Source: Botryllus schlosseri (lineage: Eukaryota). Taken from it: a DNA stretch of 33,000 nt. The notes under the pieces were generated by a model, which was not told where the DNA came from, ran no database searches, and saw nothing but the letters and a program-made list of their open reading frames with translations. Shown piece after piece: positions 11,401 to 32,811 of this stretch; position 1 is the stretch's first letter, and each line of letters starts with the position of its first letter. The stretch covers positions 20,150,001 through 20,183,000 of the forward strand of contig CM119379.1 of assembly GCA_051294905.1 (NCBI GenBank), read 5' to 3'. A program made the translations under genes and the position numbers.

Positions 11401-14400
11401 CCACGCAAAACCCTCTCGCGGTCCACATTTGGCCCGCGGGTTGGCCACCCCTGATATTGACAGGCCCATTCGATAATTTCAGAGCCAGAGCAGTGGTAAT
11501 AATGCGGCTCCGGAGCTGGAGCCGGAGCTAATGTATGATAGAAGAAAGCTCCGGAGCCGGAGCTGGAGCAGTTTAAATTTACGGCTGCTCCAAAGCCCTG
11601 CTACACAGCGTTCAATAGTTCACGCTCACACATAACAAAAGCGATCGTATTCCGTGAACAACGAGCAAGTACGCTTCGCTTCATGGAGCTTGCACAGATC
11701 ATGATAAAACAGGGCCGGCCAACCCGTGGCCCGCGAGAAGGTTTTGAGTGGCCCGCGAAGTAATTTCCGAAATTTCTAATATCACCAAGATGGGTTGCAC
11801 AGATTGTAAACTTGCAAGGTCAAACAAAAATTTGATTAGTGTCTGGCACTTGAGATGTGTTGACTAAAATATCAGTTCCGGCGCTTTGGCAGATCCATCA
11901 GCCAGTCACATATTGGTAGATATTCGTACACTACAATAAAGCAGAATAATTTGCGATGGGTTTATCAAATGTAAAAATTTTGGACAAGCTTCGCGCAACA
12001 TGTTGTCACTTGATTTCTTGTTTTTGATATTGTTGCCACTTTGTGTGAAAATGAAAGAACGCCTAATGTATCAGATTGAGTATAACTATATATTCGGGAT
12101 TACGAGACAAAGTGTCGTTCAACATATGCGACTTTGCGTTTGCACTCGCAGTAAGACCGTTCACTATGGAACCTAGGCATAAAATAATTGACGCATTTCC
12201 TATATCCAAGTGTTGGAGGTTTTTCTAGGCTACTCCTCGCCACCTCATCCGCGTAAGCGGTGTCTTACAAAAAGCCTGGAAGTGGGCCGTACTGTAAGTC
12301 GGCAGTTACGGAATATAAATAAAGAATATCGATCTGGTGTAAATGACATAGTAGTTGACAAACACCATGAATACCTCAAAACCAACCAACCAATTGACGC
12401 ATGTTGGTCGCATCTTTCGATATCGATATGTCCAGGCGCCGCGTAGCCCAGTCCTCGCAAATTTAGCCCAGCGAAATACAGCAGGCCCGCAATATAGTCA
12501 AGTGACAATATTATTGACCTATAAACTTAAAAAAAAATTCGCGCTTCGCGCGGCTGGTGGCCTGCGCAATAGTTCGTCAACCGAATGTGGCCCTTTGGCT
12601 GAAAAGGTTGGCTAGCCCTGCGATAAAATGTATAAAACACCAAAGTATGGAAGTATAGAATTGTCGTTCCATACCATAGATTAAAATCTTCCATTCCCTA
12701 CCATACTTGCATTGTTCCATATTCCATACCAAAATATCGATCCATACCATACCATACCATACCATGCCCTGGGCTAAAGGCGTCCAAAAGTGTCTGGGAC
12801 TTCGATATTCGACATTCGATATCACGAAACAGAGTTATAAAAAGTGGGTTTAGCAAGACTTTAACTGGAAACTGAGCAGTCAACACAATGACTTGGACTC
12901 GGGCTCGAGTCATAATACCACGACTCGGACTCGACCCTCTGCTCGCTGACTTGGACTCGGACTTGACTCGGTGGTGAAGTGAAAATGACTCGACTTGACT
13001 CGAGTCAAACCTATAAAAGTGAGATTGACTTGTGACTCGGAGGCTTGTGACTTGGTTACAACCCTGACTATGACAGACATTATGTGATATCAAAAATACC
13101 TTTCACGAAATTGATAGAGGTGTTTAATATTTCCTCAACACCATTAACGTTCCAAATCCAATTTCTCTCTCTAGGGTCGACTCTGTTAACAGCTGCTTTA
13201 TCTACGATTGGAATCCAGAATCTGTAAATATATCGCAAAGAAATAGATTGTGTCTATATGAATAGTGATGTATACCGACTCTGCCGAAAAGCGGTAACTT
13301 ACTTCAAAGAATGGTGATATTGGTATCCTGAGCTGATCAACACAATATCGCGAAGGAAATCAGCCGTAACTGTATCCCTTACATCAAACAGTTCCCTAAA
13401 AATTACACAGAGAGTCAACGACAACAAAAAATGAGACAGTAATGGTTCTGCTTGGTGGCCTTGGTAACAGACACAAAGTGACACTCAGATACATCCAATG
13501 GACATATCAAGCATTAATGCATTTAATTATATAGCTGCAATGGAAACATCTTGAAATAAGACACATCTGAAATTTCTGTGACAGATCAATAAGCTATTAC
13601 AAAATAATGATGAAATCCTTCATCTCAAACAAAAGTTGCATGAATTAAAAAATAGATACCCTCCAGATCGGGAACAATATTCATTAGCCATTTCCTGGAC
13701 ACTTCCATATGAACTGTTTTGTTCTTCGGATAAAACTGGTTCGTGTTGTAGATACACGCAATAATCACGATGATGAAACTTGTACGAAATAGGATAATCG
13801 CAACTTCCTGTACATATAAAGGAGTTGAAGTGATTAAATATTTACTTTTATGTGCATAATCCAAAATAAATAACCGAGAAGTTTTGAGCTTACGAGAGTA
13901 TCTTACTTTTCATGCAAATAAACGAATGCTTCGTCGAGCAATTATCCTCAAACCATTGCCAATCTTCTTCGCGATTCATCACAACACAATCGTTACTATT
14001 GTTCGAGGCAAAATTATCGACCACATCACTACTATTCCATCTGTGGATGTCTGCGTGCGCTGATACAAAAGGTTCCCCGCTTGACCAACGAAAAATTCCT
14101 GGACAAGGTTGAACAAATATCGATTTCAATTGAAATGGATCAGTATGTCTGAAGAGCCAAAGAAGTGACAATCAGCTTTGATTCCTGAGCAAAAATGAAT
14201 ATCTAGGTATGTCTTCTCGAGTTTCACTGTCGCGGCAATATTTTATGGTAATCAATGTTAAAATATGGCTTATCATTATCATATTCATCCAGATTGTATA
14301 TACCTTCAGTTTCACGATCACTCAATCCAATCCACCACAATTGAGATCCAATATCATCGGCGGAAATATCAATCTTCGGAAGAGCATAATTGTCTACTTC

Positions 14401-17400
14401 AAGTTTTGTTAACTGAATATTAATATGAGTTGATCGAATGAATGTCAATCGTAAGCACCAGTGTGGTTTACCGGCAACAATACAGCGTCATCCTTAGCAC
14501 ATGTAGCCTCTGCCTCTTCATAAGTTAGCGGCTTCAAATGAAACAGTAATTCCATTTCTTTTCCATTGGAGAAATTCACCAGAATATATTCTAAATTATA
14601 TCATGAAGTTTTCAAAATTTAATACATATTATGTGGTGCATTATCCAGCCCTTACCAGGCCCAAAACAGGCTTCCTCGTATAAGCCATATCCTGGACTAT
14701 CTTTTGCAAAGTTGGCGATTTTATTGACATGTATGGCCGCGGTTCTGGCGGTCGCATTACGAAACCTGGAAATATCCAGCACCGGACCGTGACCATCTTT
14801 GGAACACCCACTCTAGACAAAAAATACTCAGTGGTGAGGATTAATTATTTGAATCTATGTTTGAACCGCAGAATATATCTTGATGTGCCTTGGGCTGAAA
14901 GAATAATAGGCAGAAACTTCTTTTAAAACTCATTAAACTTTTTAATAAATGAACAATAATGTATAGGATATACAGGATACATGTTTGAATTCATGCAAGA
15001 AAACAACATGGAAAATATATTTCAATAGAAAAATTAATCGATAAAATTAATCGGGTACACAGTATCATTAACTTACTTCTAAAAGCAATGATCTCAGGCA
15101 GTCTCCAGTTACTGGTGGATTGTATGTGCAACGCTCTGGCAAAACTGAAAAAGTGATTGAAAGCTAGTTATTAATAGGGATAATAATTGGACACGGGTAA
15201 TAACAATAGGTCAATAATCATATACATTTATCAACTTGACGGCATATATTTTCCTCTTTTGCCTAAACGTGACCAAATCTTTAATGTTAGCATTTTTCCG
15301 TCATTCAAATACAGTCGGAAGAGCTCTCTCTAAAAAGATTTCGCTAACCAGATTCACAAATGAAAGGGTTTTTCTTGACACAGTGCAAGTCATTCCACAT
15401 AGGCGGCGAAATATCAAGATTGATAGCACCGCAATCTTCATCGCACCAAGCATTGTTTGGCTCTGTCGCAAAACCCCCACGTTTATGCCACCTCTCGAAC
15501 GGAAAAGGTCCTGAACAAAATCAATTTAGGTTACGTACATGAAAAAAATCTTAACGCAGCAATAGTTACCAAATTCACACAGCACAGGAAGCTTGGTAGC
15601 GCAATCAATGTCAATCCACTTCATATTTTCAGAAATGGCCCCGCAATGTTGCCGATTACCTGACAAGTCGCCGTTTGGTTCCGTGGCCTTGTCCCAGTTG
15701 GAATATGCTAAAGAGTATCTATAACTGATCGGATAATTCATTTCAACTAGAACATGTCTGCATACGTGCGAAACGCCTTTTATCAGGCACGGGAATGAAT
15801 TTCCTTCTGTACCATGATTCGTGTATGTAAACTTGTTGTCCATCAGCTTGTTTCCAAACAGCCAAGTCAGTCGTGTCTCCTCGCAATGCAAAGAAGAACT
15901 TCCGAAGACTTGATGACAACATCTAAATGCACGAGTTTTAATGAAATGTGCATTTCTACTTACAATATAAACCCCATATAATTTATCATAGTTCATAGAA
16001 AATTGTCTTTTAGCTTTACTGAAATATTTCTTTCTGATCTCCCTCTAGGTTTCAACACTCGATAATGATAATATCTAAAGAATGATAACGCCCGTTATCT
16101 TTCAATGAAAGTGAAATATAATCTTTACAGCAATACCTCATGAAAGATCTTTCATAAAAATGCTTCCAAGATCCTTCGGAGAAACATCAGGGCATATGTA
16201 AATACATTTATACAAGGTATACTTAACAATGGTAGTAGAGTGTTGGCTTAAATGCTGAGCTTGTAATTTCCAATGCATTACGTTCGGTCTTAAATATGCA
16301 TTTATAATTACACAAAATCCAAACTGTACTAAAATTTGTTCTTTTTCATAATAGAATTCACCTGTATTGTTTGTCCAATCGCCAGATTAATTTCAGCGGA
16401 AGTGATATTTGCCAAGGTCCCGCCATACTTGTTGCAAAAGCGTTCAGTCGCCGATGCATTTCCAACCAAATTGGCACCCCAAATCAACCAAATTTGATGG
16501 TCCAGAGTAACGTTGGTAGCATACCAAGGAACTGTCCCAGATTCGATATCGGACAACAAATCTGCAACGCATATAATGATGGAAAGATCCATTATCGTGT
16601 CCTAATGATCATACCTCCAAAATCAGGCTGAGGGTTAGCCATCATGCCGTCGGCATACAACCAATTGCTTTCGCTATCCCGGTCACTTATTCCTATCCAG
16701 ACATCTAAAACAAAGAACTTGATAAATGTATCTGGTACGTTACGGCTGTAAAATCCAACGAACCTTCTTTCAGACTAAAGTTCCCGTTCAGCATCTTTTC
16801 AACTATCCAATCGTGCAAGTCCCGCGTTTTTGGACACGCCAGCTTGCCCCAAATACCTTCATAGTAACATAAGCCCAGGAGTAAGTTATGAAGATTATAT
16901 GCACGATAGAGTGGAGTTTTGCACTTATAATCTTGAATAGCTGTGTGAAACAGCGAAATCAACATTCAGGTATTACATACACTAATTACATAACAGTGAA
17001 AAACTTTACATTGGTGACCCAGTTCTAATTTTTCCACTGTGTTCATAAATATCTCCCGACTGGGACCTTTGTTACTTAATATTCTAACTAAGCACAACGT
17101 GGAGTGCATAGACTTTGACATAAATTTAGGATGAAATCGAAACGACAATACCAAGAAAAACTTCACAGATAGTCGGAATCACCTTCACAGTATTCGAATG
17201 CACCTTCCCAAGGCATCGGGACATCAAAAAAAAGAAAACTCTCGTTATTACGCTTCACCTCCATCGCTGCGTAATGACCTGAATACCAGTGAGAGCGAGA
17301 AAAACACTTGAAACTTGAATTTCCATAGCCACCTTCAAAATTACCTTTAGTCACCGAGCAATTTTCCCCCGAAAATATGTCAGAGCAGACGCATTCTTGA

Positions 17401-20400
17401 TTGGAACAGTTGTAAGTCCCATCGCACTGGGACCTGCATGGCTCCTCTACATGACAAAGTTCTCTATGAATGATGATATCTCAAACACAACCACAAAAGC
17501 CACTTCACCTTCAAGAACAATGTATTGAGCTGGATAGAGGCACGTAACTGAATGATAATTACAATACTGAATGAAGCACGGATAACAATCATAGCCTTGT
17601 GTCGGATGCTTACTGTCCATGCAGATGAAAGGTAATGCGTCGTCACATTCGTCAAGAGACCACATGAAGCTGTTTTCCGAATTAAACGACGCGCAATGCC
17701 GAGACCCGTGACTGTATGTGAACGAGGAGTCCCAGTTGCTGTAGTTACTCAAAACATCATGTGTTTCGACACTCGCCCAGCGAAATATCCCTAGAATAGT
17801 AAGAGATGGATCAGATTTATTCTCGTCTGCATAATTGATGCTTTGATGATGGAGGTGCGATACAACCTTTTAGGCAAGGTTATCTAGTCTGAACCACCTT
17901 GATTTTTCTCCTCCATGCTATCCCTGAATGCTGAGCGCCTAGCGGAATAGCTAGCTATAGAGTCCTTGGTATGACCCGGCTGGGTATTACACCATCTCTA
18001 TTCAGGATGTTCACAATTTAACACGGCAACATCCATTCTAGTACACATAAACTTTTGGTCTGATCGACAGACCGTCTCATCACAGATAGAACAAAATAAC
18101 AATATATCTGTAACTTAAACATTCACTTCAGAAAATGTCTTCCACGAAGCTGACTGAGTCTGCATTAAACCAAGCCCAACACTACAAACTACAGTGAGGT
18201 TCATTTATTCCTCACAACTATGCACTTCGTCTTATACACATATTGTTATCTTTTTTTAAATTTCACTAGCCCTTGTGTGTGACGCTCAACAAATTATTAC
18301 TTTAATATTTTTATGGTAACTAACTGAGACTACACAATCCTACAACAATCCTTGATACAATATTAGTCTGCAGTTACCTTCATCCCAAAAGTCATCAAGA
18401 CCTAGCCACCACTTTGAAGTGTTGAAGTATTCGTTTGCATGACCAAGTTTTTCCTCCAACTTCTGCTGTATGGCGCTACTCTCAATCTAACGATAAGGTA
18501 CCTATGATATCCAGCTGTAATGCCACATATACAATGAAAAGAAATACCGAAAAATGTAGCAACGTATTGCGACTTCGACAATACGTCTTTGCATCTTGAT
18601 ACGATTTTTTCCCGGTGTGAACCAACACCTTCATGCCATTGGATATTTCAACAAATTCTAAAAAAAGAATGATTATTAAAGTCTGGAAGTTTTCATAATT
18701 TAGATGCAAGTAATTACGAGCTTCGTGACATGATTCGGCATCAATTCCCAAATACGGTATTTTGGAGGCGTTACGTATTGCAATGAAATCTTGATATATT
18801 AACCACAAATTTGTCCGGTTGTAATATTCAAATTTAGCGAAAGGAAGACGCCCGTTCACTGGATCGCAGCCGCTCTGCAAGATAACAAATGAGGATGACG
18901 CGATCAGAAAGAACCATAAAATATAAGGATGCCAACCTGGTTGAATAATTCTTCCAAGCATGCAAGGCTGTGTGGAGGGAAGTATGTACATATTTCGGGA
19001 AATTCTGCAAAATACGACCTCAAATTATCAAAACTTGAGCACTTACTAACGCTAGGAACATAATTCATTAATTCTCGCGAGGTTGAATAATAGTAGTACA
19101 AGGCACCCGAAATCAGAATGTCAATAAAGTACACAAAATAATTCTACAAAAAATTAAAGGGCGTTCAGTGTACATGCCTTTAACAATATGCAGCAGCAAA
19201 AGCATTCAATACATCAGAGTTGTGGGTATTCACAGACCAATGAAGTAAATATAATTGTTCTCATACCAAATCCATAGCATTCCATTTGATCAGTAGAGTT
19301 GACCGCCATTATATCCAACACTTTCCTCAAGTCGGACTCATTATAAAGATGCCATTTCCAACTCAACTCCAGCCGCAAAGGATATGCAGTTCCCATTTCG
19401 ACACACCTGGTCTCGTTAACCCACAAATAATGCAAACACTCATCGCGAAGCGTAGGAAGATAAGTACAACCCTTGGGATATGCTGTACGGCAAAGAAAAC
19501 ATTACAATGCCGGCAATGTTACCATAAAAATGGCCACAGACTGACTTCTTCCAAAGCACAACATCTGAGATTGCGGATCAGAGTCTATTTCGGCTTGATC
19601 CCTGATTGATGCCATGTACGAGAGCACTTCTCTGAATATCAAGATTAGAACACGCGTGAAAGTTATCATGCAAATATTGATCATTACAAATAAATGAAAT
19701 CACAATGGCAATGCTAGTAACCGATGATATCATTGCTCTCCCCTTGATCAACTGTGTTTTAATACGTCTGCAAAAACATGCTGTCAAGCCTACCTCTGAT
19801 TGTAAGTACTGTAAAGCAATGTACGGTTAAATTCGGGTAGTTTCTCAGGATAACCAGTTCCAAACGTCACGCAGCGGACTTCCTCGATAAATATTGAGTT
19901 CAGACAAGACAATCTCGGAGGTCCGTAATACGTCAGACAGTTATTGAAATATTCTGTGCAAACATGGGTGAAATCGCAAGTAAAATTCCAATGTCGACGG
20001 TACTATTCTCACCCATGCCAAAACAGGAGAGCTGGTCGAACAAGCTTCCATTGTCGGCATCATGTCGTGACTCATTCATTGCATCGATGATATCCCTAAG
20101 AGGATAATGTAATGAATTAGTTGTATTAGAGGTCTTATCATCTACTGAGTCTTTTGACACGAAAACAGTTTTGTAGTATGCAATATAATATCACTGACCA
20201 TAAATTTGTGACGTTGAGTTCTGCTATTTCCGGTGAAGATAAATTCTTCGGTTCTCCATAACCTTCCGCGACACATTCGACACTGGTGAATATTGTGGAA
20301 TAGCAGCTAACGTCATTTGGCCCGAAAAACTTGGTACAGTTGTCAGGAAAAACTGCCAATGGTAAATATCAGCATCATAATAAGCTTGGCACTGTCCACA

Positions 20401-23400
20401 TAGCAAGCGCTCAAAGACTTGACACATGAATTTAATTTTATTATATAACAAAAGTTGTGATGATAATGTACATTAGATTGTAACGGTTATGAACTCTAAT
20501 TGAAAATTGGTTCAACCATGTAAAAACTACAATGAAACCATTGGCTGCATCTTAAATTTTGGCATGTTACACTGACCATCTCCATAGCAATACACTTGAG
20601 CTTCCTCATCTCCATTGTTAGCAGGTTCCATGTACTTGTCAGTGACTTTACCATACGTTTCTCTAAATCAAGTTGTATGAGACAGATACCATCAATGACA
20701 TAGTCCATGTATCATTCACAACAAAGAGGCAATTTACAACTGGTATCAAAGACCAGATCAAAGACCATAAATCAGGAACACCTAATTCAATCAATGACAT
20801 AATCATTGCAATGCTCACCGCTGATCAAGATCCGAATAAACCAATCGCACTTCTGTGATGTTAACCTTGGTCGGGAATTTGGTTCCCATCAGTATACATC
20901 CAGCCTCCACCCATATCGTACCAATACATACCGGACCATGAGGACCATAATACGTTGTACAGTTTTCATAGTACTCTGAAAACATCGTACAATTCTTACT
21001 TAAAGAATAGTCTTCCATATCAAAAGGTCTATTCAGATTTCGCAATGTTTATCAAATTGCTACCCGTTCACAGCTTACCCATCCCAAAACACACAATTTG
21101 CGAAGAGATGTTTGGTGCATTCGCATTCCATCTTGTGTGATTAAAAGTGGCCTCCACACGACGCAAGTCCATAGAATCGAGCACAGTGTCCTCCGCTGCC
21201 GTTAATTTATCAGGAAACTTTGAGCCTTCCTCGATGCATTCAACATATTCCCATATCGTTATGAGGCATTCGGTAGGATGTGGTCCATAATAATGGGTGC
21301 AGTTTTCAGGAAACACTAAAACAAATGCTCAATAAATACACGGTTCAGTAGATGTCCAAAACGAGTATACCATACCAATTCCAAAACATTGCATTTGCTT
21401 TTCAGCACTTCCGTTGTGAGCAATGTCATTAAATTTCTTGAAATTATATATAATTTGCCTAAAAACAACAAACATAACCTCTCATCAATACATCAATGCG
21501 ATATTGACTAACCTGATATTCAAATGTCCATAATAGTTTGACTCCGTCGAATTCATTTTGGGAGGATGCTTGGTTCCTTGTGGTAAACACCTCACACGTC
21601 CCCAAATTGTGACTAAACAATCGACATTGTTGGGTCCATAATACAGCTTACAATGTTCCGGGTACTCTGTGATAATCTTGAACATTCATGAATGTGCCTC
21701 ACAAAATTACCGAGTTTCCTCACCCATTCCATAGCAGTTAAGCTGATTCGATACATTTCCATCATCGGCAGACAAGGCGATGGCCGCAAATTTATATTCG
21801 ACTTGCCTGTGACAGTTACCAAACATATGACTGAGGATCAAAGTAGTTCAGATGCGAATACATACAGCAAATTGATTGAGTTGGTGTGACTCAATTGTGG
21901 TGCAGTCATATTTGGAGGATGCATGTATCCTTGGTATAAGCAATTCGACTGATACCACATCGTTTGTAAGCAATTCATCAAGTGCGGTCCATGATATGTT
22001 GTGCAGTTCACTAAATGATAAGCAATCCTATTTTAATCTGGTACCAATAGTTATGTAATTGTGCTATGCTGATTTATCATAGTATTCATCAGTAAGCTTC
22101 AACATAGGAGACATAAAATACTAACCCACACCAAGACACTGCATCTGCATACTGGCATCACCATTCGCCGCCATGGTCATAATGTCCGTAAAATTCCCCA
22201 TAACATCTCTGGTAAAAGCTCCATAAATAACCGAGAGAAGGAAAATGATGTTTCAAGTTATACCTTATATTTTTTGAGTCCAAGGAATTGATTTCGGTCG
22301 TCGTGAGAAAGTCTGGATGCTTGGTACCTCTTATTGAGCAATTCGAATTTCCCCAAATAGTGATATAACAATCAATTGAGTTCGGGCCATAATATTTGGT
22401 GCAGTTGTCCGGATACACTGAACATAATAATGTTAAAGGTACTGAGAAATCATTACATTGATTACCACAGTGAAAATAAGAATTCAACTTCGTATGATAA
22501 TGGTAAAACAACTACGCAACTTACAGACACCCTTCGCGATACCATAAAAACCAAACGGATAAACAATGTTACCTAATCCATAGCAATTCAGCTGATTGGA
22601 TGTATTTCCTTGATCCGCGTCATACGCAGTGAAATTGTAAAAGCTTTGAACCTCTCTAAAAATAACATGATTCCATGCAAATTCAAAACAGCCGAGTTAC
22701 ACGCACAAGATCCCCATTACCTGATATTCATAATGTCCAAAATCTCATCTTGCGTTGGAGTTAATTTAACAGGATGCATGTCGCCTTGGTCCAAGCAGGA
22801 AACATTATTCCACATGGAAATCAAGCAGTCAGTGGAATGTGGCCCATAATAATATGTGCAATTGTCCGGATACACTAGAACAGGATACATCGGAATTCAA
22901 CACAAATTTATCATCCACTAAATTGTAGTGCATACCTAAGCCAAAACATTCCAGTTGTTTGGATATATTATTGTTGTCTGCAAGGTACTTGGTCTCATTA
23001 TACAGTGAAATGATCTCTCTACAATTGATAGGAAAGGCTTGTTAACAGCACAAGGTAAAATAGACAGGCATACCTAATGTTGAGAGTATCAAATTCATCC
23101 AGTTCGTCCTTTGATAATTTTAGGGGGTATTTTGTACCGTAAGGTAAACACGTCGCTGATTCCCATATGGTAAGCAAACACCCGATGGGATGTGGTCCAT
23201 AATAATTCGTGCAATTAGCCGGGTAGACTGGAAAATTCATTAAGCGTTATAAGCTAACAAAGGAAAATATTTTCGCGACCTCACCCATCCCGAAGCATTC
23301 TTTTTGGCTTGTAACATTTGCAGAATCTGCTGCCAAAGCGGTTTTCCTGTACCGGGAAGTAACTTCCCTAAAACAGAATTTGATAATGTTCCCCAATCAA

Positions 23401-26400
23401 CTGTCAACGCAACAACAGTAGTATATCATGGCAGTATAAAGGGCCCTACATCATAGGTAAAGGAAAGACATGATGTAAAATGTAATTGATTTTTCGAATC
23501 AGTAAACACTCCATTACCTTATGTTCATGGTGTCTAGTTCGGCGTTCTGAACAGCATTCAGCTTCTGCGGGTACAAATATCCTTGCGGGAGACATTTTGA
23601 ATTGTTCCACATTGTTTCCAGACATGCCGTTGGGTGTGGACCATAGTACAACAAACAGTTATCTGGATATACTAAAACAGCAAAAGAATGCTGGATGCAT
23701 TGTAGATAAAACAGTGATTGTAACTTACCGAGTCCAAAGCATTCTTCCTGCTTAGTATCATTCCCATCGTTAGCCAAATTAGACGTCTCATTGTACAATG
23801 AAATCACTTGTCTGAGATGTATAGTATCAAATTACCGCATATATTGATAAAAAATCAATCACATCATACCTCAAGTTCATCGCGTCCAAATTCTCGTGCT
23901 CAGACAAAGTCAGATTGCGAGGATATTTATATCCCTCACGTAAACACTTGACACCAAGCCAAATCGTAACAAGACAATCGGTGGAATGCGGACCATAATA
24001 CAAAGTACAATTTGCAGGATATTCTGTGACAAATTTAATATTATCATAAAATGAAGCAAACATCATTCCACATCATACCAAGTCCATAACATTCTCTTTG
24101 GCTCGGAACATCACCATTGTCAGAGTCAGATGCTGTTTTATTATACAGGAATATAATTTGCCTGAAAATATGTCACCATTTATGTCACAAAAGATTGGCA
24201 TACAAAATGTACTAGCAGTTGGCATTCTACTGAAGTTACGTGTGTTTTTTACCTGATGTTCCGAACATCCAGTTTGGAATGCTGACTTGAATTTAGCTTG
24301 TCTGGGTATAAGGATCCTTGAGGAAGGCATCTAGAATCATTCCACATTGTTTCGAGACAGTCCGTTGGGTGTGGACCATAGTAATTCTCACAAAAATCAG
24401 GATATGCTGGAAATGAAACATTACTGTTTAACGGCATAGGCAACATACTTCAACAACAAATGCCCCATTGCAAAACATATTGCTTCCACTGGGATAATGA
24501 ATGTAAATGGTTAGCACTATACCAAGTTGGGCAAATTGGGTAAATTACGGCTAAGGCCATAATCTAAAGGTGATAAAATAGGCATAATATATATCACTGT
24601 ATGTATTGCTAACATGCCTAATTCAGCTCCTATCATGTACCATTGCCAGTATACCAAGAAGTGAGATCAAACCCTACTATTATACCTGATGCAAATGAGT
24701 GTGCTCTGAAGATCTTTATTGTGTCATGACGCCAGGATGTATATGAAGTGTATCCTTGGAATTTGTTGGGGGCAGTACTACAGACACCAGGGCTAGATGC
24801 GGAAATGTACCCTATATTAATAATTTGTACCATCTACATTCTACGTCAAAGACTAATCCCAAAATAATTGAATAGCATTTCCAAGATAACAGTTAATCAA
24901 AATAAAAGTGTGCAGCAATGATTTCATACCCAGTCCAAAGCATTCCAACTGTTTGGTTACATTTCTGTCTTCCGACAAACGAAAAGTCTCATTAAATGAA
25001 GATATTATTTCTCTGTAAATGAGCAATACCTTTAACAAAATAAAAAATCACCTAATATCAGATGTACTTGCCTCAAATTCATCGCATCCAATCTGTCATG
25101 TTCAGTTTTAGTGAGATTATAAGGAAATTTATAGCCAGCACGGAGACACTTTGTACCAATCCATACCGTGACCAGACATTCAGTGGGGTGTGGACCATAA
25201 TACTTTGTGCAATTCGCGGGATAAGCTGATAATTATTGAAAATTGAAACACGTGATATGCGATAATTAACATGCCATTTCCAACCGAGTCCGTAGCATTC
25301 CTTTTGACTGGAAATGTCACCGCTATCAGCGTCAGCAGCCGTTTTCTCATATAAGGAAGTAGCTTGCCTGTCAACATCACACGGTAGACAACAGTAAGAA
25401 AGTTCCAATAAAATGTGTCAAGTAAATCCATTGGGGTGCTACAGATTAGGTATGTGAATGTCGGCAAATAAATATACGCGTTTTAGCTGAGCATCATCTT
25501 GTAATGTATGTCATTTGGGGCAATGAGTTCTATTCTGCAATGGAAAAATTTCAACTGAATTCATGTAACGTCTGGAATAGCAATGGATAATATGCAAAAT
25601 AGTCTGCAAAATAACTTTCACATACTTTCAAGTGGAATTTAAAAAAAATTAGGCTTTACAGTGTCATGAGAATTCAGCTTCATGGATATTTTTGTGTAAA
25701 ATCGATTTGTGCAAGTTTGCAGGCTTGCATTGCTTTTAAAGAACTGAATACTAGGAAAAAAACGTTCAATAGCAAGATTCACAGAATCATGGTGACAATG
25801 GCAATGACTGAAACAGTACAATGGGTCCTTCACCAGAGTACTAATTCTGGATGGTGATAGGTTTCAACACATACTGAATAGTATTTGTCAAGCTTATCGA
25901 CATACATAATGTGGAATTCTCCTAATTCATTTTCAATTCGAGCTCGAGATAAAGAGAGAATCACCAAGCATATCGCAATCACCAACTTTTCAATGTCGGG
26001 AATCATTCGAATAAAGATTACCTGATATTCATTGAGTCCAGTTCAGAATGCTGACTCGCATTCAATTTCTGTGGGTATAAATGACCTTGCGGTAAACACT
26101 TTGAGCTGTTCCACATTGTTTCCAAACAATCCGTGGGATGGGGACCATAGTACAGTTCACAGTTTTCAGGATAAACTATGCGCATGACAGAAAATACATG
26201 TAAACTAAATTGAGCAGGAAAAGTTCAGAATTTACCAAGTCCAAAACATTCTTTTTGCTTTGTCGCATTCCCAACATCCGCCAAACGGTATGTCTCATTG
26301 TACAATGAGATTACTTCCCTGTATATGGAAAGGTAAGCGGGAAATGAGGGGCTGACCAGGATATCTTCACCACAAACCTTAAATTCATGACGTCTAAATT

Positions 26401-29400
26401 TTCATGTTCAGTTGCAGTTAGATTATGAGGATACTTATATCCATGCCTCAAACATCTTGACCCGAGCCATATAGTAACTAGGCATTCGGTAGGGTGCGGA
26501 CCATAATAGTTGGTGCAGTTTGCGGGATATGCTATAGAAAATAGTAAATAGTTGAGGACAATCATGAGACTACTCATATTTGATATACTACCAAGTCCGA
26601 AGCATTTTTTCTGGCTGGAGACGTCCCCATTGTCTGCATCTGCGGCAGTTTCAAAATATTGCGAAGTAATTTCCCTGCATATAAAATATTTGACTTAAAA
26701 ATAGTGTTTGAGAGAAGCAGTCATTTCAAACCATGATAGATCCTATTTAACAGCCCGTTAACTAATAAATTTGGCAGGCCAACAGAAATGTGTCAATTTG
26801 AAGTTCTAAGAAATAATTAGCAAATATTTCACAATATGTTAACAATACCATGCAGGCGCGTAGCCAGCCGAAAAATAAGGGGTGGGTTTGAAATAAAAGA
26901 GGGGGGTTCGATTTTTTTCGAATTTAGTAACGTAGCATCGATTCATTAGGGTTAAGTACATGCGATGCGTAAATAACGATTATACAACATCCCCGTGTTC
27001 GCGATTATAGGCGTATGATAAGCTTGTCGACGAGTCCGGAAGTGCCGTTAATTAGCGACTCCCTGATCTGTCGTGAACAATGAAATACGCACGCCTCGAA
27101 CATTGGAATACGCGCGCGCTTATCAACGCGTCGAACAATTAAATTCGCCCGCTTATTAAAGCGTCCAACAATTAAATACGCCCGCTCATCAATGCGTCTT
27201 ACGTAGCATCGAGATTTGCGCCGATTTCAGGTGGTTCAAACCTTACCTCTTTTATAACTCAAGCCTACTGGACTATAACTGAAGACTAGTGGAAATCAAT
27301 TACGCATGTGCGCACGCGTCGAACATGATTGCGGACATTCGATGTCATTCGGTTACGAGATGTCACTCTTTAATCACAATTGCTAATCAACATATACTTA
27401 AATAGCATTTTATCCAAGCCATCGAGAAATAGGAGCCAAAGCATGGTATGCCCAAGACGTGGTAGTTAGGCTAGCGATATCTTTAGTCCTAGGCCTATTG
27501 CAGATGCGATTGTGTAGGCCAGCGAAGATATCGTGCACACCAAGCCAATGCAGATGTGATTGTGAAGGCCAGTGACGATGTCGTGCGCACAGGGCCTATT
27601 GCAGATGTGATTATTCAAGCCAGCGGAATTAGGCTTGTTGGAGACGCGGTAAATCAGGCTAGTAATGATTGCCGAACGCGCGACAATGAATGACCTGATT
27701 TCGCAATCATCTCAGCGGGAGATCGTGTCGCGTTACATTGTGCAGTGCAATGCGCAGAGCACATGGACGCTAATTAGCAACACGCCTTTCGTTAATTGGC
27801 CGCGCGCAATACTGATAATACGACTTATTGAATTGCAACCGGGTATTAGCGTCAGAGCGGTCATTTAAATAGGGCGAGGTTTCGCGTTAAAGGAGGGGGT
27901 TTCGCGTTTCTAAAGGAGTGGGTTTCGACCCCCGAAACCCCCCCTCTGGCTACGCGCCTGATACCATGTATGAACTGTAGGAATTCATACTATTTCCATA
28001 TTCATATTCATATCATTGAATTTGCCAGAACAATTTGCAGGGCATTGCCCATCTTAACAAAATCCAAACAAATATCCCCAGTTTGATCAACATCTACATT
28101 CTTACCTGGTTTATAAGATCTCCCTACCTGATGTCCATGTTGTCCATTAGCACATCTTGACTTGCGTTTAGCTTTTCCGGGTACAGTGAGCCTTGTGGCA
28201 AGCATCTGGAATTGTTCCACATCGTTTCTAAACATTCTGTTGGATGGGGGCCGTAGTATGCACCACAGCCGGATGGATATACTGTGAAGAGTACAAAATA
28301 GTTACACAATAGATATGTAATCTGCAACACATCTCTTACCTAGTCCAAAGCATTCCAATTGTTTAGTAGCATTTTGGCTATCCGCCAGACTGTATGTCTC
28401 GTTGTAGAGAGATATTATTTCCCTATGTGATAGTAAATGATTAAAAATCGTTGTAATTCAATTGTTTACAATACAGACCTCAAATTCATGCTATCCAAAA
28501 TCTCATGCTCAGCCGCAGTTAAATTGTGAGGATATTTATATCCCTTAGGCAAACATTTCGCACCAACCCATATTGTGACAAGACATTCGGTTGGATGAGG
28601 GCCGTAATATTTTGTGCAATTTGCAGGATATTCTATGAGAAATAGAATCCGTCAAAATTCACTCTAAACAGAAATAGAATTGAACGCTACCGAGTCCAAA
28701 GCATTCTTTTTGTCGGAAGATATCGCCATTGTCAGCTTCTTTCGCAGTATATTCATAGAATGCAGTAATTTGTCTGAATATAATAATAAATGTGTTTCTC
28801 ATCAGAAAATTTCATGATGCTGGAAAGTGAAAGATCAATGAAATAGAAATGTTGAATATGTTAAGTGATCAACACCATCTGACTGATAATAAGGTGCCTT
28901 CTGAAAATGTATCACCTGATATTCATGGCATCTTGTTCCGCATTTTGACTCGAATTGAGCTTTTCCGGAAACAAAGATCCTTGAGGCAAGCACTTGGAAT
29001 TATTCCACATGGATTCCAAACATTCCTTTGGGTGCGGACCGTAGTAGGACTCACAACCACTAGGATAAACTACAATAAACAAGTATTATTACCGTCAAAT
29101 AATAAAAAATATTGCATTTCATACCTATCCCGAAGCATTCCTCTTGCTTGGTGGTATTTCCATCATCAGCCAAACGAAACGTCTCATTGTATAAGTCAAT
29201 GACGTCTCTGGAAATAGCGGAGTAGTAATTGTCAGATGCATCATTTGCTCAATAAAGAAAATGCTTACCTAAGGTTCATAGCATCTAAGTTTTCATGTTC
29301 AATCGCAGTAAGATTGAAAGGATATTTATCCCCTGTTCGTAAACACTTTGCTCGAAGCCAGATGGTGACAAGACAGTATGTTGAATGTGGACCGTAGTAC

Positions 29401-32400
29401 TTGGTGCAATTAGTAGGATAAACTGCATGTAAGAAGTTTTTAAAGATATCAAAGCTTTTATGAGATGGCATTTAACAACATTCGTACCAAGTCCATAGCA
29501 TTTCTTTTGACTCGAAATATCACCATTGTCGGAATCTGATGCGGTTTTATTAAACTGGAAAGCAATCTCCCTGTAAGGACACAATCATAAATGTCATAGA
29601 TAAATACTCATAAATAGCAAACAAAACAATTTTTGTATAATAACTTGGACTCCAACCTGATGTTTCTACCATCCAGGTCAGAATGCTGGCTTGCATTCAA
29701 CTTATCCGGGAACAAAGATCCTTGAGGCAAGCATCTTGAATTGTTCCAAATTGTTTCTAAACAATCTGTCGGATGTGGGCCATAATAAGCTTCACAACCA
29801 TTAGGATACTCTGAAAAGTAAATCAAAAGTGTGGAATGTGTACCAGAAGGAAAAAAACAATTTCTTACCCAATCCAAAACACTCCTCTTGCTTGGTTGCA
29901 TTGGCATCATTGGCCAGATCGTACGTTTCATTATACTTCGATATTATTTCCCTAGAAAATCGCAGTGGGATCAGATATGCAGCAAGCAACAGTCAATTCA
30001 CATACCTCAGATTCATAGCATCTAATGCTTCATGCTCCCTTGCAGTCAGATTGTAAGGATATTTCTGTCCACTTATCAAACATCTTGCACCAAGCCATAT
30101 AGTAACCAGACATTCAGTTGGATGTGGACCATAATACTTTGTACAATTGCCAGGATATACTGTGACAGTTACAATATTAGGATATTTCAAGTGGAAGTGA
30201 TGCTATGCAATATCTCACCGAGTCCATAACACTCCTCTTGGCTGGAAACATCACCATTATCAGCATTTGTAGAGATTTGTTTATATAAAGAACCAGCTTG
30301 CCTGTGGATGGTAAACAATACGCAGAGTAAGCAGAATAGTGGAACAGAACTACTTGAGGTAGAATTAATCAATCTGATCTGCGATGAGTTTGAATAGCAC
30401 AACATTAATCATACATTCGAATTGATTTTAGTTGGTAAACATCACCCTTGGTTGCATAGAGGCCCACTGTCATAGAGCATACCTGATATTCATTGCATCC
30501 AACTCAGAATGCTGGCTTGCGTTTAACTTCTGTGGGTGTAAATGCCCTTGAGGTAGACACTTTGAGCTGTTCCACATTGTTTCCAGACATTCCGTCGTAT
30601 GCGGGCCAAAATACATGTCGCAATTATCAGGATAAACTATATAGATCATAGGAAATTCATGTCGTGTACATTATTATAAGAAAATCATACAAGAAGACTT
30701 TGATTTTACCGAGACCGAAGCATTCTTTTTGCTTAGTTGTATTCCCATCATCCGCCAAACGGTATGTTTCATTATACAACATTATTATTTCCCTAAAAAA
30801 CGAAGGAATCAAAACCATCCATACATTTAGAAAGAATGAAGCACATACCTCAAATTCATGGTGTCGAATCTGTCATGTTCAGATTTAGACAAATTCAAAG
30901 GATATTTATCACCTTGCTTTAAACATTTTGCACCCAACCAAATTGTAATGAGACATTCAGTTGAGTGCGGGCCATAATATTTATCGCAGTTGGTGGGATA
31001 TTCTGTTGGAGAAAAGTATTATTTGCCATTTATGGAAAACGGAAATAGCATGCAGATCACCTAGTCCATAGCATTGTTTTTGATTCAAAACATCGCCACT
31101 GTCTGCACTTGCAGCAATTCTGTCATATTCCGAGGAAATTTGCCTGCAGATTAAAATATCAGATTATGCTTCATACAAAAGAACACATAGTTACATAATA
31201 TTAAAATCATAGTCAAATTGACAAATCGAACCTGATATTCATAGCGTCTTGTTCAGCATTTTGACTGGAATTGAGCTTTTCAGGGAACAAGGATCCTTGA
31301 GGCAAGCACTTGGAATTATTCCACATGGATTCCAGGCATTCTGTCGGGTGTGGACCGTAGTACGCCTCACAACCACCAGGATACACTACAATAAACAGAT
31401 GTATTTAACTGTTGTAAAAACATAAATGGATTTCTTGCCTATTCCAAAGCATTCCTCTTGCTCGGTGGCATTGCCATTATCAGCCATGTCGAACGTCGTC
31501 TCATACAAGGCAATAATATCTCTGAAAATAGCAACATATGGAACGATGTACAAACTACATTCCTACTACTATACTGTAGCACTCACCTAAGGTTCATAGA
31601 GTCTAAATTTGTGTGTTCAATCATAGTAAGATTGTAGGGATATTTGTAGCCTGCGCGTAAACACTTTGCACCAAGCCACATTGTCACGAGACATTCGGTG
31701 GAGTGTGGACCATAATAGTTGGTGCAATTAGCAGGATACACTGTCATAAATAAAATACGTTAACTGAAATTTTTTTCAAAATGTCAATGTATCTTACCAA
31801 GACCGTAACATTGCTTTTGACTGGAAATATCCCCATTGTCTGCGTCTGATGCAGTTCGATTATAAAGAGATGATATTTTTCTACAAATACAAAAAAGATT
31901 CATATCTGCAATTTATGGCAATTATGGCAATACAAAATTACATATCAATATCAAACCATCATATATTTCACATCATGGCATCACAGTGCCATTAATTATT
32001 CATTTTATTGAAGTCAAGAATAATTACTGAATGCGGCCAAATTACGGCTTCGATATTTGAATATTAGCATTGATGGATTCCGAATTCAGTAAAAAAGTTC
32101 AAAAAAATTATTATCGGTATCTGTGAATATACAAAACTTCACTAATTGATATCTGACCTGACATTCATTGCATCAAGTTCAGCATTCTGACTTATATTCA
32201 ATTTCTCCGGGTACAGATCCCCTTCAGGTAGACAGTGGGATTCATTCCACATTGACTCGAGACAATTTGTGGATTTAGGACCATAGTATGAGTCGCAACC
32301 GTCCGGATAAACTGGAGACGCAAGACAAATTTAATATATGAACAGCAACAACCCAAAAGATAAATATAAGACGCACCAAGTCCTAAGCATTCCAACTGTT

Positions 32401-32811
32401 TGCTTGTATTTCCATTTTCAGCTAAACGGAACGTCTCATTGAACAGCGAAATTATGCCTCTGAAAACAGGCAAGTGGATGAAAAGATTGATTGGAAAAGG
32501 AGCACCTACCATATACCAACCTCAAGTTCACAGTGTCTAAATACAGCAGCTCACTAGTGGTCAAATTGAGAGGATATTTCGTTCCCTTCGACAAACATTT
32601 GGCAGCAAGCCAAATGGTTGAAAGACAGTCCGTTGAATGCGGACCGTAATACTTCGTGCAGTCAGCAGGATATTCTGTCACAAGCCAAATGTTATATAGC
32701 TATAAAAAAGTAACATGCAACATCTCACCGAGTCCGTAGCATTCTTTTTGTTTCGACACATCGCCACCGTCTGCTTCCCCTGCAATCTCATTGAATAACG
32801 ATGAAACTTGA
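1..32811 (-). CDS. Partial multi-exon gene for a giant extracellular mosaic protein (novel repeat array + CTLDs + EGF + ricin-B-like + Link-like + sushi); both ends outside the window
   Basis: Dozens of minus-strand exons with GT(GC)-AG boundaries join in compatible phases without stops from 32811 to 13100 and from 6924 to 1; recognisable Cys/Trp domain patterns; joins at 9090-8952 and 7750-6925 unresolved. Confidence 0.75.
2587..3714 (-). CDS. Ricin-B-like trefoil 2, inside sushi 5 (exons 3548-3714, 3392-3486, ~2811-2891, ~2587-2700)
   Basis: FVIMSAHRGQCLRID...SECDWKDHLYTWIW...QIRMVGTKMCLSL...IRRCDHAEPKQKWSC...SSWYVRG...DNICSYL. Confidence 0.75.
3776..3886 (-). CDS. Sushi domain 5, N-terminal half
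   Basis: DVTCPLPGKSEPDTSAVLGNVSQYLFSDTLQYTCDKE, then GHEL at the start of the next exon. Confidence 0.8.
4217..5528 (-). CDS. Sushi/CCP domains 1-4 (5313-5528, 4840-5046, 4588-4782, 4217-4459)
   Basis: Each shows C..P...YxC..G...C...G.W.P...C; phase 1-1 modules. Confidence 0.9.
5093..5122. repeat. TACA/TACG microsatellite, intronic
   Basis: tacatacgtacgtacatacatacgtacata. Confidence 0.7.
5774..6312. mobile_element. Non-autonomous hAT-like TIR element (GACTCGAGTC-rich family), full length
   Basis: Termini CAGGGTTGTAA / TTACAACCCTA; flanks GTGAATAT vs GTGAGTAA (6/8 TSD); subterminal GACTCG/GACTTG repeats; intronic. Confidence 0.8.
6415..6551 (-). CDS. Orphan CTLD C-terminal half
   Basis: Phase 2-1 exon after a 57-bp intron: RWCVTFSLLSEAKVGFEERNCHHPHYFACKK (C3...C2...FxC4 spacing). 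Confidence 0.7.
6609..6924 (-). CDS. Link (XLINK, hyaluronan-binding fold)-like module (exons 6864-6924, 6609-6813)
   Basis: KAIC...GIWADKKDLTDGTKDGFVDGC...INYTV...GC...G...FAWCYR follows the Link pattern C...G..LAT..QL..A...GF..C...YP...C...AYCY; divergent, lacks the GW motif. Confidence 0.55.
7323..7882 (-). CDS. Unassigned coding exons (7757-7882 clear; possible exons near 7624 and 7323-7467)
   Basis: 7757-7882 is a clean phase 1-1 exon (ENLFLVQKGGQLANVNASCG...ASCFLK); 7323-7467 is open and ends MICRRQNSYNMS at a GT; joins ambiguous. Confidence 0.35.
7940..8952 (-). CDS. Ricin-B (beta-trefoil) lectin-like domain 1 (exons 8811-8952, 8592-8719, 8248-8375, 7940-8057)
   Basis: FMISN...RCI / SCDYADSKDLEWVW...HLMHVASGRCL / VTPCNLTDPLQHWICR / KW...YVC: C-x(6-8)-[QE]xW and HxxSGxCL repeats. 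Confidence 0.72.
9090..9223 (-). CDS. Candidate exon: degenerate C-terminal part of CTLD 5
   Basis: Phase-1 acceptor inside the TSD at 9224-9225; open frame ANETSQICTIQ...RHKPFLCARQN ends in a CTLD-like PFLC but lacks one expected Cys; followed by TAG overlapping a possible GT donor; downstream join unresolved. Confidence 0.4.
9536..9637. repeat. 51-bp tandem duplication inside the composite element
   Basis: TACGTCTACTCTACAGCTTCCGCGAGC[G/A]AAATGAGATAGTGAGCAGATCAT x2, one mismatch. Confidence 0.9.
9657..10232. mobile_element. Nested hAT-like MITE with GGCCCGC subterminal repeats
   Basis: Flanks GTCCATAA / TTCCATAA (7/8); left end ...CATACGGCCAGCGGGCCGGATGCGGCCCGC, right end CCGGCCCGCCCCTG; TIR degenerate. 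Confidence 0.55.
10753..11453. mobile_element. Nested hAT-like MITE, family copy 1
   Basis: Termini CAGAAATGGCCAACC / GGTTGGCCACCCCTG; flanks ATAGAGAC vs ATATTGAC (6/8); homologous to 11710-12620 in opposite orientation. Confidence 0.75.
11504..11600. mobile_element. Terminal fragment of another TIR element (GGAGCCGGAGCT repeats)
   Basis: GGAGCTGGAGCCGGAGCT repeats ending GCTCCAAAGCCCTG; partner end not found. Confidence 0.45.
11710..12620. mobile_element. Nested hAT-like MITE, family copy 2 (inverted relative to copy 1)
   Basis: Termini CAGGGCCGGCCAACC / GGTTGGCTAGCCCTG (13/15); TSD TGATAAAA vs CGATAAAA (7/8). Confidence 0.85.
12812..13066. mobile_element. Truncated second copy of the 5774-6312 family (right end only)
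   Basis: Aligns by eye to about 6085-6312 and ends GACTTGGTTACAACCCTG. Confidence 0.8.
13100..13807 (-). CDS. CTLD 5, N-terminal part (exons 13660-13807, 13303-13395, 13100-13221)
   Basis: SCDYPISYKFHHRDYCVYL...ANEYCSRSGGELFDVRD...FWIPIVD...NWIWNVNG; phases 1-2, 2-2, 2-1. Confidence 0.75.
13907..14590 (-). CDS. CTLD 4 (exons 14472-14590, 14304-14412, 13907-14098)
   Basis: LTYEEAEATCAKDD...WWIGLSDRETEGIFRWSSG...DCVVMNREEDWQWFEDNCSTKHSFICMK; same exon phases and same 109-bp middle exon as CTLD 1. Confidence 0.9.
15349..15510 (-). CDS. CTLD C-terminal half with EPN and WND motifs (best assigned to CTLD 2)
   Basis: Phase 1-1 exon GPFPFERWHKRGGFATEPNNAWCDEDCGAINLDISPPMWNDLHCVKKNPFICES. Confidence 0.85.
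15570..16561 (-). CDS. CTLD 3, complete, lying between the two halves of CTLD 2 (exons 16362-16561, 15766-15922, 15570-15707)
   Basis: ATERFCNKYGGTLANITSAE...FFALRGD...WKQADG...YSNWDKATEPNG...HCGAISENMKWIDIDCATKLPVLCEF; middle exon boundaries are less certain. Confidence 0.78.
16615..17278 (-). CDS. CTLD 2, N-terminal half (exons 17183-17278, 16764-16856, 16615-16704)
   Basis: FLFFDVPMPWEGAFEYCEGIWGKLAC...DVWIGISDRDSESNWLYADG; ends at a phase-1 donor before the long-loop Trp/EPN region. Confidence 0.8.
17345..17446 (-). CDS. EGF-like exon
   Basis: Phase 1-1 exon EEPCRSQCDGTYNCSNQECVCSDIFSGENCSVTK with six Cys and a CxC...G..C ending. Confidence 0.75.
17614..18657 (-). CDS. C-type lectin domain 1 (exons 18548-18657, 18378-18486, 17614-17790)
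   Basis: SYQDAKTYCRSRN...WWLGLDDFWDEGIFRW...YSNW...HCASF...WSLDECDDALPFICM; lacks EPN/QPD and WND. Confidence 0.88.
18718..32811 (-). CDS. Tandem array of 29 complete (plus one partial) ~79-aa four-cysteine modules of unrecognised family
   Basis: Exon A (mostly 154 bp, phase 1 to 2), e.g. 32521-32674, 32158-32311, 31587-31740, 31232-31385, 30849-31002, 30483-30636, 30006-30159, 29657-29810, 29269-29422, 28916-29069, 28479-28632, 28128-28281, 26378-26531, 26022-26175, 25072-25225, 24253-24406, 23870-24023, 23518-23671, 23074-23227, 22721-22874, 22264-22417, 21866-22010, 21513-21666. These alternate with exon B (83 bp, phase 2 to 1), e.g. 32729-32811, 32377-32459, 31798-31880, 26592-26674, 21376-21458. 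Divergent units continue to 18718. Confidence 0.93.
26853..27960. mobile_element. 1.1-kb non-autonomous TIR element in an array intron
   Basis: Perfect 15-bp TIR CAGGCGCGTAGCCAG / CTGGCTACGCGCCTG; perfect 8-bp TSD ATACCATG; internal short tandem repeats; no transposase. Confidence 0.93.

Follow-up and report, generated by a model that had tools for sequence, protein, structure and literature searches.

The window analysed here, 33,000 nt of the Botryllus schlosseri genome (GenBank assembly GCA_051294905.1, contig CM119379.1, positions 20,150,001 to 20,183,000 of the forward strand), carries on its minus strand a tandem array of exons encoding a 79-aa, four-cysteine module, with C-type lectin (Lectin_C) and Sushi (CCP) exons downstream on the same strand. 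The array spans positions 18931-32810 of the window and comprises 29 units plus the last exon of a 30th. A six-frame scan with a profile of the first exon of the unit (exon A) returned 29 minus-strand matches from 32672 to 18931, of which 26 score 65-101 bits and the remaining three 62, 24, and 16.5 bits; matches to the second exon (exon B) in the same scan span 32810 to 19268. No exon-profile match above 9 bits was found on the plus strand of the window, and the array match is far above chance expectation. An earlier sequence-only reading had counted at least 29 tandem copies of a 237-nt coding unit, about 2,300 aa in all. Its counts and array coordinates agree with the scan (29 x 79 = 2,291 aa of module within the window), while the strand needed correction, as the gene lies on the minus strand.

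Unit structure and splicing

In all 20 canonical units the 237 nt are divided into a 154-nt exon A and an 83-nt exon B, and in-silico splicing yields an open 79-aa frame in 20 of 20 cases. Splice sites are AG/GT everywhere except for one GC donor (exon A of unit 15). The phase of exon A is 1 at its start and 2 at its end. The final G of exon B is completed by two bases from the start of the following exon A to a split codon (G/gt...ag/AA or TN) that encodes E, V, or A. The protein at this junction therefore reads C[FY]GL-[E/V/A]-YP, and the previously described tail C[FY]GLG keeps its first four residues and loses the final G. Introns are mainly 53-91 nt long, with four of 142-277 nt and others of 523, 654, and 1,453 nt. 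In frame, exon A contributes a 50-aa block (YPxNCxxYYGPHxTxCLxTIWxxxxCLxxGxKYPxKLxxxExxxLDxMNx) and exon B a 27-aa block ([EQ]IxSLYNETxxLADxGNxTKQxEC[FY]GL), in agreement with the YP...C...YYGPH consensus of the initial reading.

Two subtypes of the module, here called L and N, alternate strictly through the first 20 units. These units were delimited by their splice sites and spliced frame; each is given below as its full minus-strand span, followed in brackets by exons A and B. Subtype L comprises unit 1 at 32377-32674 (32521-32674, 32377-32459), unit 3 at 31439-31740 (31587-31740, 31439-31521), unit 5 at 30710-31002 (30849-31002, 30710-30792), unit 7 at 29869-30159 (30006-30159, 29869-29951), unit 9 at 29125-29422 (29269-29422, 29125-29207), unit 11 at 28340-28632 (28479-28632, 28340-28422), unit 13 at 26236-26531 (26378-26531, 26236-26318), unit 15 at 24930-25225 (25072-25225, the exon with the GC donor, and 24930-25012), and unit 17 at 23729-24023 (23870-24023, 23729-23811), with the L-like unit 19 at 22936-23227 (23074-23227, 22936-23018). 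Subtype N comprises unit 2 at 31798-32311 (32158-32311, 31798-31880), unit 4 at 31061-31385 (31232-31385, 31061-31143), unit 6 at 30219-30636 (30483-30636, 30219-30301), unit 8 at 29488-29810 (29657-29810, 29488-29570), unit 10 at 28691-29069 (28916-29069, 28691-28773), unit 12 at 26592-28281 (28128-28281, 26592-26674, separated by the 1,453-nt intron, which holds short tandem repeats), unit 14 at 25285-26175 (26022-26175, 25285-25367, separated by the 654-nt intron), unit 16 at 24079-24406 (24253-24406, 24079-24161), and unit 18 at 23285-23671 (23518-23671, 23285-23367), with the N-like unit 20 at 22573-22874 (22721-22874, 22573-22655). Inside the unit 12 intron, positions 27107-27927 contain four short tandem-repeat arrays with periods of 33, 21, 50, and 23 and a raised GC content of 47%, probably a repeat or transposon insertion.

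The nine last units, at lower coordinates and thus on the C-terminal side, are increasingly divergent and were placed on the minus strand by profile. Unit 21 (22130-22415) has an exon A in frame at 22266-22415 (82 bits) and a weak exon B at 22130-22171 (13 bits); unit 22 (21725-22008) has exons at 21868-22008 (62 bits) and 21725-21805 (47 bits); and unit 23 (21380-21664) has exon A at 21515-21664 (81 bits) and a weak exon B at 21380-21451 (14 bits). Unit 24 (21080-21316) is complete and intronless, with 79 codons in a single open frame, and supplied the sequence used for folding. Exon A of unit 25 lies at 20830-20973 (74 bits), with no exon B found by profile. Unit 26 (20014-20350) retains both exons, at 20201-20350 (72 bits) and 20014-20094 (47 bits), and unit 27 has an exon A at 19805-19951 (65 bits) and no confident exon B by profile. 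Unit 28 (19268-19480), the second intronless unit, is degenerate, its A part at 19358-19480 scoring 24 bits and its B part at 19268-19348 scoring 33 bits. The last unit, unit 29 (18931-19002, 16.5 bits), is a degenerate half-length copy (FPEICTYFPPHSLACLEELF...) that precedes the first C-type lectin domain, the same position as that of the last degenerate unit in the Styela protein P0155.

At the other end, exon B of the 30th unit (32729-32811, minus strand, 54 bits, AG/GT) has its exon A beyond the window end, at extended coordinates 33346-33495. The array indeed continues past the window, as had been proposed: 20 further exon-A copies on the same strand reach about 17.9 kb beyond its end, which brings the whole array in this gene to about 49 units and about 3,900 aa. 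Across the 495.5-Mb genome, the exon-A profile found at least 130 matches (a lower bound, since 150 of 186 candidates were scored), all of them on contig C9 within 165 kb (20.035-20.200 Mb). A second minus-strand block at 20034752-20086729 of this contig holds at least 85 more exon-A copies, and two small plus-strand groups of three copies each lie at 20103380-20104479 and 20128791-20129802. These neighbouring groups look like paralogous genes, comparable to the module paralogues LOC120346536/38/44/48 of Styela clava, some of which contain modules only or Sushi domains N-terminal to the array.

Conservation and subtypes of the module

Alignments show C6, C17, C27, and C76 to be invariant, along with G11, P12, W22, G31, and P35. 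The cysteine spacing within the 79-aa unit, C-x10-C-x9-C-x48-C, recurs in all 57 aligned units, which were drawn from the window, from four ascidians, and from viruses, and all four cysteines are kept in 20 of 20 spliced window units. The alignment consensus contains the core motif YPxxCxxYYGPHxxxCLxTxWxxxxCLxxGxxxP and the tail ADxGxxxxQxxC[FY]G. Subtype L reads ...CLVTIWLGAKCL..G.KYP.NLT..EH...REIISLYNETYRLAD.GN.TKQ.ECFGL and subtype N reads ...CLE.MWNNS.CLPQGSL.P.KLN.SQ...RQI.S.Y..TA.DADNGD.SSQK.CYGL; units are 68% and 64% identical within the two subtypes and 47% identical between them. Their strict alternation indicates that the working repeat is a pair of 158 residues. The median ratio of nonsynonymous to synonymous substitution (dN/dS) is 0.12-0.14 within subtypes, with dN at 0.23 and synonymous sites saturated. 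The copies are old and have evolved under purifying selection.

The sequence-only reading had described a two-disulfide module. The four cysteines are invariant, and two disulfides per module are most likely, presumably pairing C1-C4 and C2-C3; a search for natural units that have lost a cysteine pair, which could reveal the pairing, found none. Each unit also carries on average 3.05 N-x-S/T sequons at fixed positions (5, 23, 37/39, 59, and 69).

Downstream exons and ascidian relatives

Downstream of the array, on the same strand, Pfam identifies three Lectin_C exons at 17447-17752, 15526-15996, and 13890-14171 (E 0.0034, 1e-4, and 1e-6), followed by three Sushi exons at 1757-2071, 427-765, and 34-369 (E 5e-6 to 8e-5, all above gathering score). 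The array is N-terminal to these exons, as the earlier proposal of a lectin/complement cassette had it. In the window the C-type lectin and CCP domains are exons on one strand, and the predicted protein of the Styela orthologue described below carries both in a single chain and in that order, a combination typical of selectin or mannose-receptor-like mosaic surface proteins. The gene extends at its 3' end beyond the window.

Relatives were sought with the exon-A profile in HMMER against 1.84 billion representative proteins, which gave 497 matches at E<=0.001. Among the best 150 of these, all named matches are 'uncharacterized' ascidian proteins. They include two Styela clava models, XP_039272237 with 25 units and isoform X2 of LOC120345301 (XP_077971250.1), a 7,864-aa 'uncharacterized protein' with 45 exactly spaced units. 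In the latter, the units are followed by three Lectin_C domains, a CysR/Ricin_B domain, at least ten Sushi domains, an F5_F8_type_C domain, and hydrophobic membrane segments, the last being seen only in this predicted model. Phallusia mammillata CAB3262894.1 has a C-type lectin domain followed by three modules, and Clavelina lepadiformis is also represented among the named matches. In Ciona intestinalis, module arrays on one 10.2-Mb chromosome, apparently badly split up by automatic annotation, are represented piecemeal by about 30 short 'uncharacterized' models (P0008, P0209-P0232).

LOC120345301 is likely the orthologue of the window gene. Its even-numbered units are the best matches for the L units of the window, and its odd-numbered units for the N units, and within the Styela protein identity is 69% in register versus 48% out of register; by this comparison the two-unit repeat is older than the split between Botryllus and Styela. 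The two proteins share the 79-aa module, the in-register subtype alternation, the degenerate last units, and the succession of lectin, CysR/ricin-B, Sushi, and F5/8C domains, but best-matching units are only 53-62% identical and the Styela model is N-terminally incomplete.

Two regions between the downstream exons of the window were also noted. At 8179-8763 on the minus strand, two open frames with QxW-like motifs (...LQHWICRS..., ...LEWVWTS...) lie at the place of the Styela CysR/ricin-B domain, and Pfam returned no match for these window fragments. Positions 9229-12767 contain nested inverted repeats at 10761-10970 and 12416-12612, their arms 51-93 nt long and 78-84% complementary. On the flanks are microsatellites of the CCATA type and, at 9536-9637, a 51-nt duplication; the whole resembles a transposon insertion within an intron in the lectin portion of the gene.

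Family searches and predicted fold

Pfam searches of the window units, including the intronless unit, returned no family at E<=1, and searches of ascidian and viral module proteins at E<=10 returned no family above gathering cut-offs for the module. EGF, Sushi/CCP, CUB, TSP1, LDLa, Kringle, WSC, Ig, and FN3 domains were rejected on the basis of gathering scores and an all-helical predicted fold; whole ascidian proteins gave only matches below threshold or summed over repeats, EGF_4 at E 0.48 being the nearest of those listed. Several unexpected Pfam families for P0001 (Chromo_2, TRI12, Bclx_interact, and others) were rejected because they are sums of weak repeat matches, with zero stretches passing singly. 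Saposin-like proteins (SAPLIP) combine the saposin helical fold with three disulfides formed by six cysteines, whereas the module has four cysteines and no SapB match, and the 50 top-ranked of 48,161 solved chains include no saposin. Rusticalin, another ascidian repeat protein, has beta-defensin-like repeats of 33-34 aa with the pattern Cx6Cx6-7Cx8Cx7CC (PMC6339383), which differ from the module in length, cysteine number, and spacing. Literature searches on ascidian gene symbols, ascidian lectin/Sushi proteins with novel repeats, and giant-virus PA14/TSP1 proteins found nothing relevant.

AlphaFold, run on intronless unit 24 with a 57-row alignment, predicts an all-helical domain of four helices (residues 15-24, 40-47, 51-65, and 70-77), with a predicted local distance difference test score (pLDDT) of 94.5 and a predicted template modelling score (pTM) of 0.83. 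The tail that had been called helical-looking is thus predicted to be so, together with the rest of the module. For a Styela pair of L- and N-type units, the helical elements of the single unit are seen twice (pLDDT 97.0, pTM 0.86), which suggests that adjacent units pack in a defined geometry, bearing in mind that repeat alignments may inflate AlphaFold confidence for the pair.

Solved structures gave no convincing match, either by sequence profile against the PDB (best E 0.59) or by Foldseek (best E 4.9). The best-placed solved structure, the alpha (lid) sub-domain of Lon/AAA+ proteins, scores at background level with 5-16% identity; AAA+ lid domains are cytoplasmic and have no disulfides, and the likeness is a shape resemblance only. 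Structure searches of BFVD (best E 2.2) and of the ESM Atlas, by shape and by features, were likewise unconvincing. Among 2.3 million AlphaFold DB clusters, the sole confident Foldseek matches are nine entries of the A0A6C0 series, an accession block that we take to be giant-virus metagenome data. Their probabilities are 0.99-1.00, the template modelling score is 0.69-0.74 for most single-unit matches, and E values for the pair go down to 1.4e-5; entry names include 'Major capsid protein N-terminal domain-containing', 'Spondin-like TSP1', and 'Link domain-containing'.

Homologous modules in giant viruses

The protein library also contains a non-ascidian match to the exon-A profile, P0121 (E 4.1e-10), a 702-aa protein whose 5-kb contig is densely filled with genes. 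P0121 consists of an N-terminal hydrophobic anchor, a cysteine-rich region, two modules, and a PA14 domain. A word-based search with its module region found P0121 alone. Relatives occur on IMG/VR contigs, one of which is labelled as a giant-virus metagenome bin, and on contig L012 a major capsid gene of nucleocytoplasmic large DNA viruses (Capsid_NCLDV, E 2e-59) lies about 3 kb from the module gene. The family has 49 members, all environmental, on contigs of up to 306 kb, with variable C-terminal domains (PA14, F5/8C, TSP1, or PAN).

Alignment of 40 ascidian units with six viral modules by hhalign gave a probability of 98.2% and E 2.8e-14 over 75 of 79 columns, with the four cysteines aligned; by this profile comparison, the ascidian and viral modules are homologous. 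The membrane-anchored proteins of giant viruses (Nucleocytoviricota; the P0121 family, A0A6C0C423, A0A6C0JBU9, A0A6C0KQZ1, and others) share the four cysteines, the GPH..CL...W...GC..G..P core, and the predicted four-helix fold, and are likewise extracellular-type mosaics with the lectin-like partners PA14, F5/8C, TSP1, and PAN. In contrast to the ascidian array, they have two copies only, 21% identity, no introns, no ADxGD/N motif, an N-terminal anchor, and a different orientation of the module pair (root-mean-square deviation of 8-11 A for the pair). On contigs L011, L012, and L013, the module proteins share a conserved cysteine-rich region upstream of the modules (...C..ITSCDQLDGTNCGYCFYND...ICAWCPT...), PSI-like in appearance and with no Pfam match, while their C-terminal domains are swapped between PA14, F5/8C, and TSP1/PAN, with one weak Link-like match.

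Discussion

The module is a genuine, probably extracellular domain that no curated family covers. In the databases and literature searched it is new, while the mosaic architecture of tandem modules with lectin and CCP domains is of a known kind: arrays of small disulfide-bonded modules occur as CCP/Sushi domains in CR1 or SVEP1, SRCR domains in DMBT1, and CysR-CTLD in the mannose receptor family. Such proteins resemble the window gene in having tandem modules of 60-110 aa, mostly encoded by one or two exons with symmetric phases, together with lectin or CCP domains and a very large size, whereas their modules are beta-rich and recognised by Pfam and the module described here is predicted to be all-helical with four cysteines only. 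The suggestion of an undescribed domain outside the standard families therefore holds as regards curation, and needs widening as regards distribution, since the module extends beyond this genome and is present, unnamed, in ascidian RefSeq models and giant-virus metagenome proteins. Of the checks that had been recommended, the Pfam, protein-library, and structure searches recovered these relatives and no characterised domain.

With moderate confidence, we propose that the array forms the outer end of a lectin-bearing surface protein, as a rod or periodic surface that is long, heavily N-glycosylated, and probably stiff. The region would be the N-terminal, membrane-distal portion of an ascidian surface glycoprotein of mosaic build and very large size. 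Pairs of 158 residues in a fixed predicted packing would build up a long stiff rod or filament, and the glycosylated array would expose a periodic face to the cell exterior. Beneath it would lie a set of domains of carbohydrate-binding and complement-control type (C-type lectin, ricin-B/CysR, Sushi, and F5/8C) and a membrane anchor, the latter taken from the orthologue. Because the array is membrane-distal in that orthologue, the earlier picture of a stalk that lifts lectins is doubtful, and an outer filament or multivalent surface is the apter description. The membrane-anchored proteins of marine giant viruses, with two copies of the module beside lectin-like domains, are in keeping with a building block of general use outside the cell, whether structural or adhesive.

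Several points weigh against this proposal. A search upstream of the array identified no signal peptide or first exon. The membrane anchor comes only from the predicted Styela model, whose multi-pass C-terminus may be a gene-model fusion, and stiffness rests on a single AlphaFold pTM value, possibly inflated for repeats. Paralogues vary, some having modules only and others carrying modules C-terminal to Sushi or lectin domains, so the role of the module may not depend on the lectin cassette. Three bulk RNA-seq runs, read at 6-13%, gave no read on the stretch, which counts as no test, and no Logan RNA run is among those containing it; the contigs of run X1, which had been presumed to be RNA, are unspliced, so that this run is probably DNA.

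The main rival reading is that the module is itself a recognition domain for glycans, microbes, or self/non-self, with the array serving as a multivalent, diversified pattern-recognition or allorecognition surface in place of a passive rod. We regard this as rather unlikely but worth weighing. In its favour are the fixed core with variation at other positions, the massive local expansion into several paralogous genes, the large clusters in Ciona and Styela, and domain partners that are always lectin, CCP, PA14, F5/8C, or TSP1, typical of innate-immune and adhesion proteins. Contigs from other samples under the same species label (32623-32811, P0030) also differ from the window in unit 1, with several substitutions that include amino-acid changes and may reflect high polymorphism or a close paralogue. 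However, a dN/dS of about 0.13 overall is purifying rather than diversifying, and the conserved sequons suggest a mostly glycan-shielded surface. That the module is instead a divergent member of a described family, such as a saposin-like or other small disulfide-bonded helical domain, seems very improbable. It is small and helical, with termini probably tied by a disulfide and a length that we take to be near that of saposin-like domains, but neither Pfam nor profile and Foldseek searches of the PDB yielded a family, and the AAA+ lids, the nearest in shape, are cytoplasmic and lack the cysteines. We give almost no credence to the array being a decaying or silent repeat, a pseudogene or annotation artefact from which no protein is made. 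The empty RNA-seq runs, the degenerate C-terminal units, and the exon B copies that were not found would fit such a repeat; against it stand the 20 canonical units that are all open, exact in length, and correctly spliced in silico, the strong purifying selection despite saturated synonymous divergence, and the subtype register held in common with the Styela orthologue. The degeneration of the last units is also found in the Styela protein, and the three-module Phallusia protein presumably derives from an mRNA.

The origin of the module is a separate matter. Among cellular life the module may be confined to tunicates and have been transferred horizontally, in either direction, between their lineage and a marine giant virus. 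Ascidians would then have multiplied it to more than 100 copies per genome and put it to use as a novel component of the cell surface or tunic; we hold this to be possible, though doubtful. Tunicate cellulose synthase is of known bacterial origin, and such a transfer, if true, would be a second, virus-linked case beside it. It would also point to present or past infection by giant viruses, either of tunicates or of organisms closely associated with them.

A domain that makes up thousands of residues per protein and occurs in at least 130 copies in this genome is missing from Pfam. Once the family is curated, dozens of ascidian gene models that now exist as fragments could be mended at once. 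The predicted block of two units is small and well folded, and its expression and structure determination should pose little difficulty. The viral homologues, the most surprising element of this report, offer a concrete instance, open to testing, in which giant viruses and a chordate lineage have a domain in common, and they suggest surface adhesion as a possible role for the viral proteins.

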